A DNA stretch of 64,000 nt from Salpingoeca rosetta (GCA_033442325.1 JAWQFM010000022.1:650746-714745); one strand, 5' to 3'; numbered from the stretch's first letter, positions 2,853 through 12,997 are shown. The notes: generated by a model from the letters alone, not told the origin. A program made the numbers and translations.

Positions 2853-3414
2853 CTTCGGGTTGGTGTGGTTTGGTCGTGGTCGTGTGGTTGTTGTTGGTTG
2901 TTTGGTTGTTTGGTTGGTGTGGTTGTATTTTTGGCTTGGATTGGGAGAATACATGAATACCTTCATACAATTTTCCACCGACAGTTATCATACTTTTGTG
3001 CTGTCGGCGTTTGCTGTTTTGCGGGCCACCACTGTTGTCTGTCCGCAAACCAGCCAGTGTGTCCACAAACAGATCGTGTGTGTCCGCAGTGTCCGCAGTG
3101 TCCGCACACGCCGCTCATGTAAGTTAGCCTCCTTTGTGGTGTCTTGCGCACACACAAAAACACACACGCATGCACCGAGGCTGGTCATTTTTTTTTCAGC
3201 AACCAACAACCAAACAAGCCACGACGTCGATCGCACTGCTGCTCCTGTTTCGTTCCCGTTCTCATCCTGCGTCTCCCTCAGCACTTCAGCACTCACGCCA
3301 CCTTACACCAACTTCGCACCTCACCTCCACTTGGATCCCCCCCCCTTTCCCCAGACCCCAAGCCTCCCAGCCAGACCCAGCCTCACATCAGCGCAGATCC
3401 TCGGTCCTGCCATC

Positions 3415-3660
3415 TCCAAGCCTCTTTCCCCAAGTCTCCTTCTTCAAGTCTCTCTCCATCTCCAAGCCTCCGTCCCAACGTCTCCGTGCTCCCAACGTCT
3501 CCATCTCCACGACTCTACCCAAGTCTCCTTCTTCAAGTCTCTCCCCATCTCTCTCCAAGCCTCCGTCTCCTCTCCACACGGCTCTCATCAAGTCTCCCTC
3601 TTTGTCCTTCCAAGCCTTTCTCTCCAAGCCCCTCCGCTCAAGTCTCCATCTCCACGTCCA
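3415..3660 (+). repeat. Degenerate pyrimidine-rich CAAG(T/C)CTC repeat array upstream of the OTU gene
   Basis: About a dozen imperfect caagtctc/caagcctc/catctc units are visible. Confidence 0.6.
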
Positions 3661-3769
3661 CGTGCTCCCATCGTCTCCGTCTTGACGCCCCTGCCCACGT
3701 CTCTCTCCACCTCCTCCTCCACGGTTCACATTCCACCTCTCCCTCTCCACGGCCCTCTCTTCCAGCAAG

Positions 3770-4668
3770 ATGGACAGCAACAACACCAACATGGCGGCTG
3801 CCAGCATCCCTTCCGGCATCGAAGAGTTCCTCGTTGCACTGCAACATCAACAAGGGACCGGCTCAGTGCAGGAATCTGCGATGCACACCACCATGCGACA
3901 TCGCCTCCGCGACCTTGGACGTGAGGAGATCAAAACCAAAGCAGACGGCAACTGCCTGTTCCACGCCATTGCATTCGCCATCCCCAACATGGACGCTGCC
4001 GAAGTGCGTCGTCGAGTTGTCAAGTGGCTGCGGGACAACCGCGACTACTCAGCGGGCGAAGCCGGTGCCACCACGCTGGAATCTTTCGTTGCCTTTGACG
4101 ACCCCACCGGCCCGAGCAACTGGGACGAGTACTGCACCATGATGGAGCAGCCTGCCACGTGGGGCGACCACCTCACCCTCATCGCTGCCGCCAACGTTTT
4201 TGAACGGCCCATCAGCGTCGTCTCATCCCTCCCCGACGGCCACCAGTTTGTCATTCGCCCGCTGGATCCTGCCCCAAACCAGCCGTCCATCGTTGTTGGC
4301 CACTACGCCGAAACGCACTATGTGGCAACAGTGGTTGCCTCAGGCCGCTCGTGCAACTACGACGACGATGAAGACGACGACGACGACGACGACGATGATG
4401 ATGATGACGATGATGGCAGCGTTGCCGGCAGTTGCACTCAAACGCCAACTCAAACACCAACCCAGAAGAAGCGACGCAGCACAAGTGCATCTTCTACTTC
4501 TGCGTCCCAGCAGCCCAAGGGCCCTCTTAGCGGTCAGTGACACTGCTTGGAGCTCACCTCAAGCGTTTGCTCAGGATCCTAGCCCTCTTTTGCTTCTGCA
4601 GCACACCTCCCCATTCACATACATTCACACACTGAGGGCACCACACACACATCCACACATCCACACAT

Positions 4669-4738
<70 letters not shown>

Positions 4739-7700
4739 CACAGCACATCCACATTCAAAACAAAGCAGCACATACACACACACATACACACACACAAACG
4801 CAACACCCCTGATGCCTCACCACAACTCATGATCGATGTCAACACCATCACTGCGTCCTCTTCCCCACATTGTCTGCGTTGCCCTGCGTTTCTATCTGCG
4901 TTGGTGGTTCATTTCAGCCAAAGAGGTCATCTCCAGCGTGGAGGCTCACTTCAGCCGCGCCGAGGACATTGCTTCAGACCTCGAGAAGCAGATTCCGGAA
5001 ACGCCAGAGGACCTGGTACGGCCACTGCGCGACAGCAAGGACAAGTTCGACGACCTCATCTCCACTCCCATTCACATTGCGTTTGTTGGGCCAACCGGTG
5101 GCAGCAAGTCTCGCCGCGTGAACCAGGAGTGCTACCCCCAAGGCCATGGCCAGCTTCCATGGCACTCTGGTTTGGCACAGGAGCACCAGTCGCTTGGGGT
5201 ACAGCGTCTGCGGCGCGACGAGGCATTCAAGGTTCAGCTGGCCCGACTGCCGATCGCCGTCATCAGGCGCCAGCTTGAATCCCTGCAGAGGGCACAGCAG
5301 GAGCTTCTCGCCACACGCGCCGACGATGCCGCCATCATCACGCGAATCGAGCGCATCAAGACATGGATCACCACCATCAACGACACCAATGGGGCAGCCG
5401 TGCCAGAGACGCTTGATGTGCAGGATGCCCTCTTCCGGTTCGTGATCCCACCCGGTGGTGTGGACAAGGAACATTTTGTTGCGCGTCTCCTGGCAGAGCT
5501 CGGGCCGAAGGCCACGGAAGAGGAGCAAGTGTGCTTTGTCAACCGCCTCTCGCGCCTGTATGCACAGGATGCGCTGGACACCGCCATCGGCGCCATGTAC
5601 GCACTCGACGTGCAAGCGCCGTGGGTGGAGCTTCCGCCCAACGTCGTGGTGTGGGACACCCCTGGCTGGTCCAACGACTACCTCTTCAGCCCGCTGATTC
5701 GACACGCCATGGCCACAGCCCACGTCATTGCCCCGACGACGAGCAGCCGCGAGTTTGTGGAGATGAAGCGCCTGTTTGAAGAAGGCGCGGTGGCTGACCC
5801 GCACCACCATCCGGTCCTGTGGTTCTCCCTCCTGCCAAAAGGCAAAGACAACAGCAACAGCAACTACGGCGATGACTATGATGGCGGCAACAGCAGCGAC
5901 GGCGACAAGCAGCTCCAGCAACTGGTCCAGGACAAGAAAAAGGCGTACGCGGACAAGCTACGCGAGCTGTGCATGGATCCAGATGTCCTGCCAGAGGTGC
6001 GTGACCTTGGCCTGCGACCACAGCTGTTCGAGAACCTGATCTCGGGGATGCTGGTCTGGCCACGTGCGTGCCCTGCCACCACGGCCACTACTGATTGCAG
6101 TAGCGCGTGGAGTGACGAAGAGGCGGCTCCCGCAAACAACCTTTGCGATCCGGTCTTCTTTGATCAGCTGCAACACAACGTCGTCATGCCGCGCTTGGGA
6201 GCAATTCTCTTCTGCTCGTGCGTGTTCTTGAAGCGCGCCGCGTGCTGGGCCGATCCCGACAAGGAGATGGTCTCCATGTTGACCTCCACAACTCCAGAGG
6301 TGTGTATGGGTGTGGATGTTGCGTGTGTGTATGTGTGTGTGCGCGCGTGCCTGCGTGCGTGTGTATGTGTGTGTATGTGTGTGTATGTGTGTGTATGTGT
6401 GTGTATGTGTGTGTATGTGTGTGTGTGTGTAGGGTAGTCAGCGGCACAAAGCCACAGCCACAGTTTTCCATGCCATGTCTACACACACACACACACCCAC
6501 ACACCCACCCACACACGCGCGCGCGCACACACACACACACACCCACACACCCACACCCACACACACACACGCACGCACATTGTGACATACTCTGACCTTT
6601 CGTTCTTGCTGTGCTTGTGTCATGCTCGCGCAGGCATTGTGCAAGCCGATTGTTTCGGACTTCCGGCGCCTGCTGCGCGACAAACGCGAGAAGGCGTGGG
6701 ATGTTGTGACAGACGTTGTTAAAGACAGGCTGTTTGGCATCTTGCGCCACAACCTGAAGCAACGGTTCGCCCGGCAGCCACACATCAGCAAGGAGGACGT
6801 GCGGCAGTGGGCAGTGTCCGAGCAGACACGTGACGCAGTGGCACAAGTCATTCACAGCCTCTTTGATGGCACGCTGGAAGATGTAGCAGATGGGTGGTGC
6901 CAGCTGCTGCGAGCCTCTCTCAAGAAGAAGGTCGTTGGCAAGAAGGATAGCGATGAGATCAAGAAGCACAAGACGAAGCGCGCCAAGGAGTTTGCAAACA
7001 CGTTCTCCACGACACTGCAAGCAGAGAAGCAGCGGATTCAAGATGGCGTGCAGCAGAAGCTGTACTCGGTTCAGGAGCGGGTGGCCAAGGCCCTCAAGAA
7101 TGCGGCCAAGAACATGAAGGGCTCATTCACCGCAACAGCCGATGCCAGCGACGAGGCACTGGACGCGTTTGTGGAAGACAAGGTTGCCAAGATCATCAGG
7201 TCCGTGTTCGGGCGGCGTCAAGTGCGCACCGCAACCTTCTCGCAGCTGTGGAAGGAGGTGGTGGAGGAGCACATCAACGATCAGCTCCAGGAGCTGTTGC
7301 GAGAGGAGTTCCAGCTGGCCATGGACACGGCGCAGCGGCTGCAGGAAGAAGGGGTCACAGAGGCCCACCGCACGTTCAAGAAGCGCGTCAACGCGGCCAT
7401 TCGGGGCACGAACCAGCTCCTTGCCAAGCTGGCGCCAGAAGACGAGAAGGGCGTGGCAGACACCTGGCCATGCTTCAAGCGGGGCGCCGTTGACGGCCAG
7501 CGGCGCAAAACACTACCGCAAGCCGAGGACAAGGAGAAAGCGCAGAAGGACCAGCTTGGTGCGTGCGACGACCTTCGTGAGCTGCGTGTCGCGTTCATGG
7601 ACAGCCGCGATCACGCGCCCTGTATTCGCATCGACAACATCGGCGTGGCAGAGGAGGACTCCAGCAAGGACGTGAGCCTTGTTGATGCAACAGCGACGGC

Positions 7701-9675
7701 TGTTGTTGGTGCCACCGCATCAAACGAAGTCAAGCGCCGCGTGCGAGAGTTTACCAAGCTGTATCTTGATGCGCAGCACCGCGGCGTCTGCACGGATCCC
7801 GTCATCACGTGCTCCATCCCCTTCCACCGCCGCGACTGCAAGTCGTTGCTGAAGATGCTGAAGCGAGAACCCAAGCGCGATCACACGCACCACTTTCTCT
7901 GGGTGCTGGTGGTGATGGAGAGGGACGGCGAGGAAGCGATAAAGCTGTTTGGCGATGACCCTAGCGTGGTGGTGGTGGAGTTCATGGATTCCCTGTGGCC
8001 GCAGGGGCAGTTCACGGGCAGCGAGGTGCCCATTGGCAGCTGGGTGATTGACCTGATGAAGCTCATTGGCGAGTGGCTGCTCCGCAGGTTCAAGCTGCCG
8101 TACTTTGCGCGTGCGATGGCCTGCCTGAAGACGATCAAGGAGACCTGCAAGCTGGGCCGCACGCAGCCATGCACGCTTTCCCGCGCGCTGATTGCAATCC
8201 GCCACCTTCTCGAATCAGAGCAGGAACAGCAGACAATCGCCAAGCAGCAGCACATTGCGCGTAACATCAAAGACATTGCCAAAGGCATGAAGAAAGCGGG
8301 CACAATCTCTGCCGACGAGTATGTGGAGTTTCTGGAGTTTTTTTCCGATGTCCAGCCTGAAATGTATCGACAAGTGCAAGCGTCCTCCAAGTCTTCAGAC
8401 AAGGACAAGCCCACGTTTGGCTTCAAGTCCAGATCTGCAGAGGGGCTGATCATCTCTGCGCTACTGGATTCTTCCGAGACACCAGACGCTGTCAAGTCCC
8501 AGCTTCAAACGTGCGAGCAGCCGCGCGTGTGCAGCGTGGCCACGTCACCCCAGGCCACCATCCAGCACTCCTGGTACACGCTCTCCTCCGACACTGCACA
8601 CGACAACCTCAGCAAGAATCACCGCACCAACTACAAGGTCCGCGAATTCAGCAAGCTCGCCACCTCGTACAGGCAGCGGGTGCTCCTCCTCAACAACACT
8701 GCCTGCCAGCAAGGCGTGTACGCATCATCGCACATGGCCTTTATCTCCCCGCTTCTTGTGGACTCGGTGCAGTTCTTCGACTCTTACAAGAATGCCGAGG
8801 CGCGCCTCGCCAAGACGCTTCAGTACTATTTGGACGTGTGCAGTGTGGTGACGGACGAGTTTGGCTATCGCTACCGGTTCACACAGCCATCAACAGCAGC
8901 CGACCTGTCCATGGACACTGCCGAAGACGCTGTCATTGTCAGGGACAATGGCGACAATGATGATGATGGTGATGATGATGACCTGCTTGACCAGAAGTCT
9001 TCACCGTCCTCCGCGGTTTCCTCACCAACGCACACTACCCCAAAGGGTAGCTGCTCAGGTGTGTAGTGTTTGCGTGTGCACGTGCATTTGTGCGTGTAGT
9101 TATGTGCATGTGTGTGTATGCACGTGCATGTGTGTGGGTGTCGTGTTTTGCATTATGTACGTCACTGGTGGCACAGGCCTCGTTCGGGGTGTGTGTGCCT
9201 GTTGCTGCTCTTCTCATCCTCATCACCGTGGATGTCACTCAACTCACCCATCTTGTGTGTGGCGCTCATTTCAACAATTACTTGCTCGCTGCCGCAACAC
9301 AGACGCGACCCCGCGCACGTCCACGTCCAGCCAGCGGCGCCCATCGCGTGAAATGCACACAGCCGGTACGGTGCACCTCCCCACATCCCTTCTCGTGTCG
9401 TGTTATTTGGTGTGTGATTCACTGCAGCACGCGTTGTCGCGTTGGCTTAGGCCTTGCTGTCTTTGTCACACTGCCTCCTTTTCCCGCATTATCTCATCAC
9501 CACACGCCCTTTCATGCTCGCATCAACCCTGACAATACCAACCCATTGATCACGTTGTCGTTGCTTCACAGGCCGTGCAAACGGGGCGCCACGTAACCGC
9601 GCTGCCAGCCAACAAGACGAGACCGACAATGGGGAGCCCGCTTCCAAGAAGGCCAACACCAAGAAAATGGCCTGA
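3770..9675 (+). CDS. Multidomain protein (~1578 aa): OTU cysteine protease + dynamin-like P-loop GTPase + helical region + uncharacterised C-terminal domain
   Basis: Predicted exons 3770-4532, 4918-6299, 6634-9058, 9303-9365 and 9572-9675 all join in frame at GT-AG sites. OTU motifs ADGNCLFHA, WGDHLTL and HYAETHY. GTPase-like motifs IAFVGPTGGSKS and VVWDTPG. Confidence 0.75.
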
Positions 9676-10248: not shown

Positions 10249-10348
10249 NNNNNNNNNNNNNNNNNNNNNNNNNNNNNNNNNNNNNNNNNNNNNNNNNNNN
10301 NNNNNNNNNNNNNNNNNNNNNNNNNNNNNNNNNNNNNNNNNNNNNNNN
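10249..10348. other. Assembly gap (other gaps: 14531-14935, 26498-26825, 32851-32950, 36634-36772, 47670-47769)
   Basis: Runs of N, mostly flanked by microsatellites. Confidence 1.
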
Positions 10349-10354
10349 CGTAGG

Positions 10355-12997
10355 TCAGTCCCACGTGTTGACAGCGTGCTGCAGCTGCTGGCTGAAGTTG
10401 CCGACAAGTGTGGCGTACGATGCGTTGTTTGCCAGATTGACTGAGAAGCCGTCAAAGTCAAAGTCCCGGCCCGTGTCTGCTGTCAGGTCATACAGCTCGT
10501 ATGCTGCCGTTCTGTTCCAGTCCACGCGCATGGTGGTGTTGTCGAAGGGCACCCACGCTGTGAACCGGTAGTCCCCTGTCCGCATCGTGTAGCCCATGAA
10601 GTCAAAGGCGGGCAGCGGCACGTGCGCACACGCGTTGGCATCGCACTGCGTCACGTTGTACTTTGGAAACAGTGCACACGCGCACCGGCCAATCTGGGAG
10701 TAGGCCAGCTTCGTCTGTAGCTTATGCGGCGGCGCGTCGGGGTCATCAAACGCCCCTGCAAGCGACGTGCCTTGTACCCCATCCTCCACATGGTCTCCGA
10801 GACCTGCCAGGTCAGCGAGGGTGCGGTACAGGTCAACAAGCTCCGCCCGCACCTTTGTGCGCTTGCCAATGCTGTTCTGCTTCCACGGCACACGCACCAT
10901 AAACGGCACGTGCACGGCCAGCTCTGTATCCGTCTTCTTTGACCACTCGTTCAGCTCGCCAAGCTGGTACCCTGCGGCGGAGCTTCCACGGCACACGCAC
11001 CATAAACGGCACGTGCACGGCCAGCTCTGTATCCGTCTTCTTTGACCACTCGTTCAGCTCGCCCAGCTGGTACCCTGCCGTGGTGGTGGTGGTGGTGGTG
11101 GTGGTGGTGGAGGTGGTGAGTGGGTGCGCGCGCGTGTGTGTGCATGCTCGTGTGTTTGTGTGTTTGAATGTGTGTGCGCGCGCGTGTGTGTGCATATGTG
11201 CATGCTCATGTGTTTGAATGTGCGCATGTGTGTCAGTGTGTATCTTGTCCACCGTGGTCGCTGTGGAAGACGATGATGGTGTTGTTCTCGACACCAAGCT
11301 CCTCCAGCTTGCGGATGGCGCGGCCCAGGCTGTGGTCCGTCCACGTGACTGCAGCGTAGTACCACCTGCCGTGGCGTGTGGTGGCGTGATGATGTGAAGC
11401 ATAAGCACCGCGGCGGGGATGAGTGAATGCGCATGCGATTGTGTGAGTGAATGTTTGGTGTGTTGGGTGTACGCGCGCGCGTGTGTATGTGAGTGAATGC
11501 GTATGCGAGTGCGGGTAGCCTGCGCATGTGAAGCTATGTATGTGTGTGTATGTGTGTGTGTGTGTGTGATTGCAACCTGTTCATCTCACTTTCGGTATTC
11601 GACTGAGCGCTCGTCTGGAACAACGCAAGAAGGACAGCCATGCGCAGGATCGTTGATGTCGCCGTCTGTGCACGAGAACACGAGAGAGTCAAGCCAAGTT
11701 CGCGAGTGAAGGTGTGAGCTCTCACAACACATGATTGTGTTTGTGCTTGTGGACATCACAACAAGAGCAAGAGCAAGAGCAGGAGCAAGAGCAAAATCAA
11801 TAAGAAGAGCAAGAGCAAGAACAAGAACAGCAGTAGCAGCAGCAACAGCCCTACCTGCCCAGTTTCCAGCCATATAAGGCACATTTTGCGGAGGGTACCG
11901 GTGCTTGGGCGGCGCAACGTCAAACGGATAGAGCTCAGAGCCGTAGAAGCCAGCGGGGACGCGGTACGGCGTGTGTGGACGATGAACACCAATGGACACC
12001 CACCAGGGCTTGCCAGACTGATGAGCGAGCTCCATGCGCTTGAGGCCTTCCGTCAACGCCAGGTCCTCGTCTGTGTACTGGATCAAGCTGTCCTTGGTCA
12101 CGCCGCAGTAGTTGAAGTGGGGGTCGTGGATGTCACCCGGCTGGCACTCAATCCACTTTGTCTGATTCGAAGGATATGACCACGACGGTGGGTCGTCCAT
12201 GCCGTCATGATAGACCTTGCCTGCTGCCGACGTGAAGTACCCTTGCTTCTTGAAGAACTGTGGCATTGCCGTCCAATTCTTGCCTAGCGTCAGACGAGGG
12301 AGGAAAGTAGAGAGGGAGAGGGAGAAAAAGTGTGTGTGTGTGTGAGAGAGAGAAAACGTGTGTGAGAGTGAGAGAAAGTGAGGAGGGGGAGGAGGGACAA
12401 GGACGAGCAAGTAAGCAAGGGGCCGGTGAGTGGGAGATGGCATGTGAGGAAACCACAGTTAGAAAAGAGGATAATCAGAAGAAAGAGGCTCTTGGCATAG
12501 ATGCAAAGCGCTGCGATGCTGAGGAAACAATTACGCACAAACTGACATACAAACAGATACACGAACAGACACACAAACAGACACACACACACAAACAGAC
12601 AACACAACGACACAACACACCGCACAATACCACAGCAGAACACAACACTTGTACATCATAGGCATGCATGCTGACCTCCTGGGGCTTCGCGAAAGGTGGT
12701 GAGAAAGTTCAGGGCACGGGTGCGGTCTGGCCGGCGTCCAGACATGAAGGAGTTGCGCGACGGTGCACAGTAGGCGAACTGGGTGTACGCAAAGTCGAAC
12801 AGGAGGGACCGTTGTGCCAGTGCGTCGATGTTTGGCGTGATCATGTACTCGTGCCCGTAGGCGCCCAGCTGCGGTCGCATGTCATCTGCCACAAGGTGCA
12901 GAATGTTTGGCAACCGGTCTGCCGGTGTTCCGTGACACACCTCAGCAGCATCAACCACCGCCACCAGAATCAGCGCCAACACAGGCAGCAAAGCCAT
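10355..12997 (-). CDS. Secreted or lysosomal sulfatase, iduronate-2-sulfatase-like; multi-exon
   Basis: Signal peptide MALLPVLALILVAVVDA; PNILHLVADDMR; formylglycine motif CAPSRNSFMSGR; GKVYH; HRPHTPY; FHSDHGYQLGE; ELVDLYRTL; MGYTMRT. Confidence 0.9.
10879..11078. repeat. Tandem ~97-bp duplication (period 103) of a sulfatase exon start, including its splice acceptor
   Basis: 10879-10975 and 10982-11078 are identical except for one synonymous base (CTT/CTG on the - strand); 6-bp spacer ggcgga. Confidence 0.9.

Follow-up and report, generated by a model that had tools for sequence, protein, structure and literature searches.

A putative Salpingoeca rosetta gene predicted to couple an OTU deubiquitinase to a divergent dynamin-like NTPase

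Mitofusins and Drp1 are controlled by ubiquitylation and by separate deubiquitinases (DUBs); Ubp2/Ubp12 with Fzo1 and USP30 with mitofusin are further pairs in which a DUB acts in trans on a dynamin-superfamily protein. GTPases of this superfamily also act in the cell-autonomous immunity of animals. Within the OTU family, the deubiquitinase OTUD6A acts in trans on Drp1 (PMC7718948). Here we describe a locus of Salpingoeca rosetta at which both partners appear to be encoded together. The window we analyzed is a stretch of 64,000 nt (GCA_033442325.1 JAWQFM010000022.1:650746-714745; all positions are counted from its first letter unless a protein or another contig is named), and the candidate gene runs from 3770 to about 9675 on the + strand. 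Judging from sequence comparison, this interval is most likely one gene that encodes an OTU domain, a dynamin-like NTPase and a long tail. We consider the fused architecture together with the dynamin-like fold highly probable, and we put the whole explanation, in which architecture and fold are blended with the mechanism proposed below, at a probability of roughly 0.6.

Three ORFs lie in this interval, all on the + strand (ORF listing: 3770-4540, 4836-6437 and 6622-9066). The initial annotation of the locus had joined them by phase-compatible GT-AG introns (phase 1 and phase 0), and the coordinates and the frame arithmetic agree with this. The motifs that it had named (DGNC, THY, GPTGGSKS and DTPG) were all located at the places given for them in the translated exons. 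The predicted product is most likely about 1520-1580 aa long and made up of three modules (Table 1).

Table 1. Predicted features of the candidate OTU-NTPase-tail gene (window coordinates)
Feature	Position	Strand	Description
Exon 1	3770..4532	+	OTU domain at residues ~40-190; Cys62 and His183 motifs; run of ~20 Asp; basic, Ser/Thr-rich end
Putative intron 1	4533..4917	+	Phase 1; GT 4533-4534, AG 4916-4917; CA microsatellite; long polypyrimidine tract before the AG
Exon 2	4918..6299	+	Divergent dynamin-like P-loop NTPase, ordered at residues ~1-300; a disordered stretch, acidic in part, and a conserved patch rich in Cys follow
Walker A / G1 motif GPTGGSKS	5088..5111	+	Residues 57-64 of exon 2; Ser instead of Gly before Lys
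G3 motif DTPG	5655..5666	+	Residues 246-249 of exon 2; within the family-invariant WDTPG (W245-G249)
Putative intron 2	6300..6633	+	Phase 0; GT 6300-6301, AG 6632-6633; rich in TG/CA microsatellite
Exon 3	6634..9059	+	808 aa; ~276 N-terminal residues predicted helical; conserved region ~380-745 (window 7771-8868); acidic tail
Uncertain 3' end	9060..9675	+	Donor GT 9060; in-frame stop 9064-9066 if the donor is unused; candidate last coding segment leading to TGA 9673-9675

A full HMMER scan of 1.84 billion protein representatives with exon 2 found five relatives (E-values 3e-32 to 2e-5), and a search with profile A3, for which proteins of 639-2033 aa were eligible, added a sixth as its sole new member (P0010). 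One relative, P0005 (1162 aa, from EukProt), is the complete ORF of a transcript from the choanoflagellate Choanoeca perplexa; the rest derive from contigs assembled from metagenomes or reads, and those of the scan were called on Logan, ENA (TARA included) and JGI sequences. Metagenome scans with alignments A2 and A5 gave no further loci; word-index searches with exon 2 and exon 3 gave no match, which is a weak negative since these searches are length-limited. The product of the S. rosetta gene itself was returned by no protein search, including the scan that has no length limit. As far as these sequence searches reach, the NTPase and the tail constitute a small family that is seen in choanoflagellate-like sequences only.

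Comparison with these relatives, as well as with homologous loci on contigs (L001-L009), bears on whether the interval holds one gene. For exons 2 and 3, the N-terminal part of P0005 matches exon 2 and its residues 841-1095 match residues 460-728 of exon 3 (BLASTP E-value 1e-12), and in L001-L004 the homologues of exons 2 and 3 stand in this order on one strand. For the junction between exons 1 and 2, phase-1 acceptors are found just before the N-terminal helix of the NTPase in the window, L001, L003 and L006, and their positions in the alignment agree to within a few codons. The acceptor AG lies at 137-138 in L001, after a polypyrimidine tract of about 100 nt, and at 1641-1642 in L003; in L006 a 15-codon first exon, which matches the N-terminus of P0005, is spliced on at this acceptor. 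Exon 2 contains no in-frame Met before residue 226, and a local scan of 4541-4917 (with 4641-4679 excluded) found no credible tiny first exon, the only candidates leaving introns of 18-63 nt with poor donors. Given the shared phase-1 acceptor, the lack of an early Met in exon 2 and the lack of a credible tiny first exon, an upstream coding exon is needed. In L003 (a metagenome contig, about 28-31% identical) such an exon has a counterpart: a Pfam OTU domain (E-value 1.1e-10) and an acidic Ser/Asp linker stand upstream of the NTPase and tail exons, and the OTU, middle and NTPase exons are connected in frame by two GT-AG introns of phase 1, whose donors are GTGAG and GTACGA. The claim of a single OTU plus dynamin-like gene is thus supported by its relatives, through the shared phase-1 intron, the exon order in L003 and the span of P0005 across exons 2 and 3, and this support is of a comparative kind.

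Several observations weigh against the interpretation given above. Those at the first junction would fit two adjacent genes, namely a 256-aa OTU protein that ends at 4540 and an NTPase-tail protein that starts from the ATG at 4836, with the order in L003 reflecting conserved adjacency. The OTU ORF ends in a stop of its own at 4540, 8 nt past the proposed donor; a separate NTPase gene could begin at the in-frame ATG at 4836; the NTPase-tail protein of the Choanoeca clade works without an OTU domain; and L003 is a single metagenome contig, the OTU part of which lies outside the second assembly, L002. We still regard two genes as quite unlikely, because the 27 codons that would follow the ATG at 4836 form a polypyrimidine tract that runs up to an AG and matches the acceptors of L001, L003 and L006 in place and phase, because the OTU, middle and NTPase exons of L003 are in frame with good donors, and because the gap of 378 nt, mostly microsatellite, would need to contain both a 3' end and a promoter. 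Of the 31-mers sampled from 3770-9675, a share of 0.79-0.82 occurs in eight sequencing runs, and the share predicted is 0.76-0.78 for the exons alone, 0.87 if only the two large introns are removed, and 0.64 without exon 1; that these runs are RNA is a guess, which we count among the reservations, and the support they lend to the single gene is weak.

For exon 2, an AlphaFold2 model (m2c5bec2923bd) was built from an alignment of six sequences; it has pLDDT values of 60-89 over residues 1-300, is disordered after residue 303, and has a pTM of 0.56. In a Foldseek search against the PDB, the model matched SynDLP best (E-value 3.7e-7), followed by mitofusin-1 (4.6e-4) and mitofusin-2, BDLP, IniA, Fzo1 and EHD4. 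VIA-align against all 48,161 representative chains placed dynamin-superfamily proteins in each of the best 14 positions (Z 11.0-7.0), with ordinary and small GTPases at 6.8 or below; the Z scores include 11.0 for SynDLP (251 aligned), 9.8 for Fzo1, 9.7 for the Campylobacter DLP and 9.3 for both MFN2 and BDLP, and, lower down, 8.4 for IniA, 8.0 for MxB and 5.8 for the G domain of GBP2. In the ESM Atlas, the search by features reached 0.96 with Dynamin_N/MMR_HSR1 clusters, and the search by shape gave TM-scores of 0.45-0.47, all with Dynamin_N. Based on this model, exon 2 most likely encodes a very divergent large P-loop NTPase of the dynamin superfamily, nearest to the membrane-fusion class (SynDLP, BDLP and mitofusin/Fzo1). 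The initial annotation had taken the lack of a P-loop GTPase fold in the product of 4918-6299 as the outcome that would speak against it, and the fold predicted is dynamin-like.

A profile of the family searched against PDB sequences pointed elsewhere, with Irgb10 (E-value 0.0026) as the best match and Tgtp2 (0.012) behind it, covering the helix before the P-loop, the P-loop and a WDxPG-like G3; weak IIGP Pfam matches were also seen in P0002 (E-value 0.014) and L005 (E-value 0.024). Taken at face value, these matches would place the protein among the IRG immunity GTPases (p47, IIGP-type) and not among the dynamin-like proteins. The IIGP (PF05049) matches, however, score 14-15 bits vs a cut-off of 24 and occur in relatives only, and the PDB profile match spans about 50 residues. 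The spacing of about 185 residues between G1 and G3 also speaks against an IRG, as does the absence of any IRG chain from the top 50 of every fold search, where dynamin-like proteins stand at the top. We therefore rejected the IRG assignment as very improbable and treated the Irgb10/Tgtp2 signal as generic TRAFAC similarity.

Within the dynamin-like assignment, the sequence motifs give a mixed picture. The Lys-Ser of the P-loop, an HxT switch-I motif and WDTPG are conserved across the family alignment; a canonical GxxxxGKS is present in P0001, P0004, P0005 and P0010, and P0002 has Glu for the Gly before Lys. Since these motifs are conserved across about 22-30% identity, nucleotide binding can be argued at least for the family. 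The remaining reservations belong here. The exon 2 model has a mean pLDDT of just 56 and draws on six sequences, and exon 2 has no significant match in Pfam, in PDB sequences (phmmer) or in NCBIfam. The Pfam family Dynamin_N (PF00350) matches neither the window protein nor five relatives, even at E-values of 0.1-1; among the sequence-based searches, the language-model features of the ESM Atlas alone indicate Dynamin_N. In the window copy, Ser replaces the Gly before the P-loop Lys (with Lys-Ser kept), and G2 has Ser instead of the Thr of the HxT motif, next to an invariant G3 WDTPG; no family member has a G4 [NT]KxD after the equivalent strand, where there is merely a loosely placed Asp. Because of the P-loop Ser, the G2 Ser and the family-wide absence of G4, GTP binding or hydrolysis by the window NTPase may be weak or absent. 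Likewise, the model of exon 3 has a mean pLDDT of 44 and is unusable, with helices over residues 1-276 and a mixed region after them. The label of dynamin-like GTPase in the initial annotation is supported for the fold, by structure prediction and three fold searches, and not by Dynamin_N, G4 or a canonical P-loop.

The same substitutions, together with the missing G4 and the Glu of P0002 at the corresponding P-loop position, would be expected of a pseudo-NTPase that has lost GTP binding or hydrolysis and has kept the dynamin-like shape as a scaffold, so that the OTU deubiquitinase would sit on a static oligomeric platform. We consider this possible but doubtful, given that no full member of the family has lost the Lys-Ser of the P-loop or the DTPG of G3 and that the P-loop is canonical in four of them. 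At the end of the NTPase exon we also observed a family-conserved Cys-rich patch, C-x-C-[FV]-F (window 6200-6250, alignment A4 columns ~510-525).

Exon 1 matches the Pfam family OTU (PF02338) with an E-value of 2.3e-12 and 47.9 bits, vs a cut-off of 23.3. The catalytic Cys and His claimed earlier are in place, with DGNC at residues 59-62 (Cys62) and THY at residues 182-184 (His183); as the Pfam match ends at profile position 90 of 128, His183 is assigned by motif and position alone. The OTU domain of L003 shares 31% identity with that of the window (E-value 9e-16) and has the motifs DGSC and EEHY at the corresponding places. Among PDB sequences, the nearest match is OTU domain-containing protein 2 (7pl7), which is weak (E-value 0.0015); PDB matches of exon 1 to Rad6 were discarded, being produced by the poly-Asp run. 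By sequence, exon 1 encodes a putative OTU deubiquitinase that looks intact and retains its catalytic motifs.

Low-complexity linkers of acidic character occur repeatedly. A poly-Asp run follows the OTU domain (window 4355-4420), and L003 has a run of Ser and Asp in the corresponding position (~505-550); a second run, rich in Asp, Gly and Asn, is found near the C-terminus of exon 3 (window 8950-8985). The metagenome homologue that bears the OTU domain (L003 968-1384, L002 338-844) contains one more coding exon, of about 140 aa, between its OTU and NTPase exons; Pfam does not match this exon, and the window lacks it.

The tail encoded by exon 3 (808 aa) has no significant Pfam, PDB-sequence or fold match, and a profile of its alignment A2 found nothing among PDB sequences. 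Foldseek with the low-confidence tail model returned noise only, and the ESM Atlas features are weak (Sey1_3HB and GBP_C at 0.82-0.86, with the tail or its conserved part never above 0.86). Relatives are found by tblastn, at E-values of 2e-54 for L001 and 6e-33 for L002/L003, and the best-conserved blocks in alignment A2 lie at residues 380-745. As to the long helical segments described in the initial annotation, helices are predicted for the first 276 residues of exon 3, and this prediction comes from the low-confidence model (pLDDT 44) alone.

The 3' end of the gene is less clear. Past the donor at 9060, small internal exons compatible in phase can be placed in 57 ways, and the exon 9335-9396 (62 nt) is one of these 57. 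A single intron at 9060-9608, which leads to the same stop (9673-9675), is just as possible, and so is termination at 9066. The pair of small 3' exons proposed earlier, which would bring the whole protein to about 1578 aa, is thus compatible in phase but is just one of 57 options. The candidate last coding segment, up to the TGA at 9673-9675, encodes a short basic tail, and basic tails likewise close P0005 and the product of L004.

The OTU domain is distributed unevenly in the family. It is present in the window gene and in L003, and for the closest relative, L001, the contig breaks off 138 nt ahead of the acceptor. In the Choanoeca-like clade (P0005, P0004, P0010 and L006-L009), no OTU domain is found within 1.1 kb upstream, and the transcript opens with a short exon. 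Since this clade is without an OTU domain and the window gene and L003 have one, the domain was probably added in one clade (window gene plus L003) by exon shuffling at a pre-existing phase-1 intron, as far as sequences tell. The very long exons had been taken as consistent with a mobile-derived gene. Homologous loci (L001, L003 and L006) have long exons too, so these are a family trait and no evidence of mobile origin, and no transposon features were seen, no repeat search having been made across 4641-4679; we dropped this inference.

A literature search found no paper on an OTU-dynamin fusion ("OTU" mostly matched "operational taxonomic unit"), and no other protein with an OTU and a dynamin-like domain was found in the protein collections searched. 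This agrees with the initial annotation, which did not recognize the architecture in characterized proteins. Both domains are of known kinds, and their combination is new within the literature and collections searched.

We propose a mechanism that may account for this combination. Nucleotide-dependent dimerization of the G domain and stalk-mediated assembly on a membrane or another surface would concentrate the tethered OTU domain there, and the OTU domain, held on its flexible acidic linker, would strip ubiquitin from the assembly itself or from neighboring proteins. A dynamin-type switch and the erasure of ubiquitin would in this way be coupled in cis, a coupling that separate DUBs provide in trans for Drp1 and mitofusins. 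In one likely use, the assembly would protect or regulate itself against turnover by ubiquitin, which is how separate DUBs serve Drp1 (OTUD6A) and the mitofusins; another would be the delivery of DUB activity to the surface where the NTPase assembles. The mechanism as a whole is tentative, and we rate it somewhat below even odds.

The initial annotation had suggested a defense effector. In such a role, membranes that are damaged or enclose a pathogen would be the site of NTPase assembly, and the OTU domain would edit their ubiquitin coat, similar to animal GBP/IRG and ubiquitin systems. A small, fast-evolving and lineage-restricted family with a variable N-terminal module would suit this, as would the general immune use of dynamin-superfamily GTPases in animals, but the closest folds are those of housekeeping fusion-type proteins, and no known defense genes adjoin the locus (TBCA lies upstream and a sulfatase-like ORF downstream). 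We consider a defense role unlikely. A broader version, according to which choanoflagellates alone would possess a dynamin carrying a nucleotide-gated ubiquitin eraser that would edit the ubiquitin coats of pathogen-containing or damaged membranes, as part of a pre-metazoan ubiquitin/dynamin immune layer, appears slightly less likely still.

Of the two neighbors, TBCA is represented by an exon at 2505-2978 on the - strand (Pfam TBCA, E-value 6.4e-15); its transcription runs away from the OTU gene, and it sets the 5' boundary of that gene at about 2980. The interval 2980-3770 is probably a bidirectional promoter or 5' UTR zone common to both genes. The downstream neighbor is an ORF of 213 aa at 10355-10996 on the - strand, convergent to the OTU gene, which on visual inspection resembles the C-terminal portion of a sulfatase and has no Pfam match at an E-value of 0.001 or better. 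An assembly gap (N-run) lies just 3' of this ORF, at about 10250-10350.

If the predicted fusion holds, it would be a natural "Rosetta stone" for ubiquitin and dynamin, making the link between the two directly testable in S. rosetta, which is genetically tractable. The family is also a small dynamin-like one that sequence profiles missed entirely, which shows how much of the diversity of this superfamily among the nearest kin of animals escapes standard annotation.

We compared the predicted protein with four groups of known systems. With OTU-family deubiquitinases it shares a Pfam score above the cut-off, the DGxC motif of the Cys and the HY motif of the His; it differs from them in that the OTU domain is tied to an NTPase module via a poly-Asp linker. 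With IRG/IIGP, GBP and Mx proteins, which are large GTPases, it has a predicted large G domain in common, and its P-loop and WDxPG-like G3 weakly resemble those of IRGs; these proteins, however, rank below the fusion-type dynamin-like proteins by fold (MxB and GBP2 at the Z scores given above), and the window protein has no significant match to their families.

The fusion-type dynamin-like proteins (SynDLP, BDLP, Campylobacter DLP1/2, IniA and mitofusin/Fzo1) are closer. The likeness consists of a large predicted G domain that contains additional strands and inserted helices (200-250 residues aligned at Z 8.4-11), the Lys-Ser of the P-loop and a DxxG motif; a long region after the G domain is predicted, at low confidence here, to be mostly helical. 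Unlike them, the window protein has no sequence-family match, no G4 and the long spacing between G1 and G3; no transmembrane or paddle region was identified in it, its tail has no detectable similarity to their stalks, and none of these proteins has a protease domain. The DUB-dynamin pairs that act in trans (OTUD6A-Drp1, Ubp2/Ubp12-Fzo1 and USP30-mitofusin) resemble the window protein in the functional coupling of a deubiquitinase to a dynamin-superfamily protein, a coupling that we infer for the latter. They differ from it in that the window gene would place both in one predicted polypeptide, in which the partner of the deubiquitinase is a divergent, orphan dynamin-like protein.

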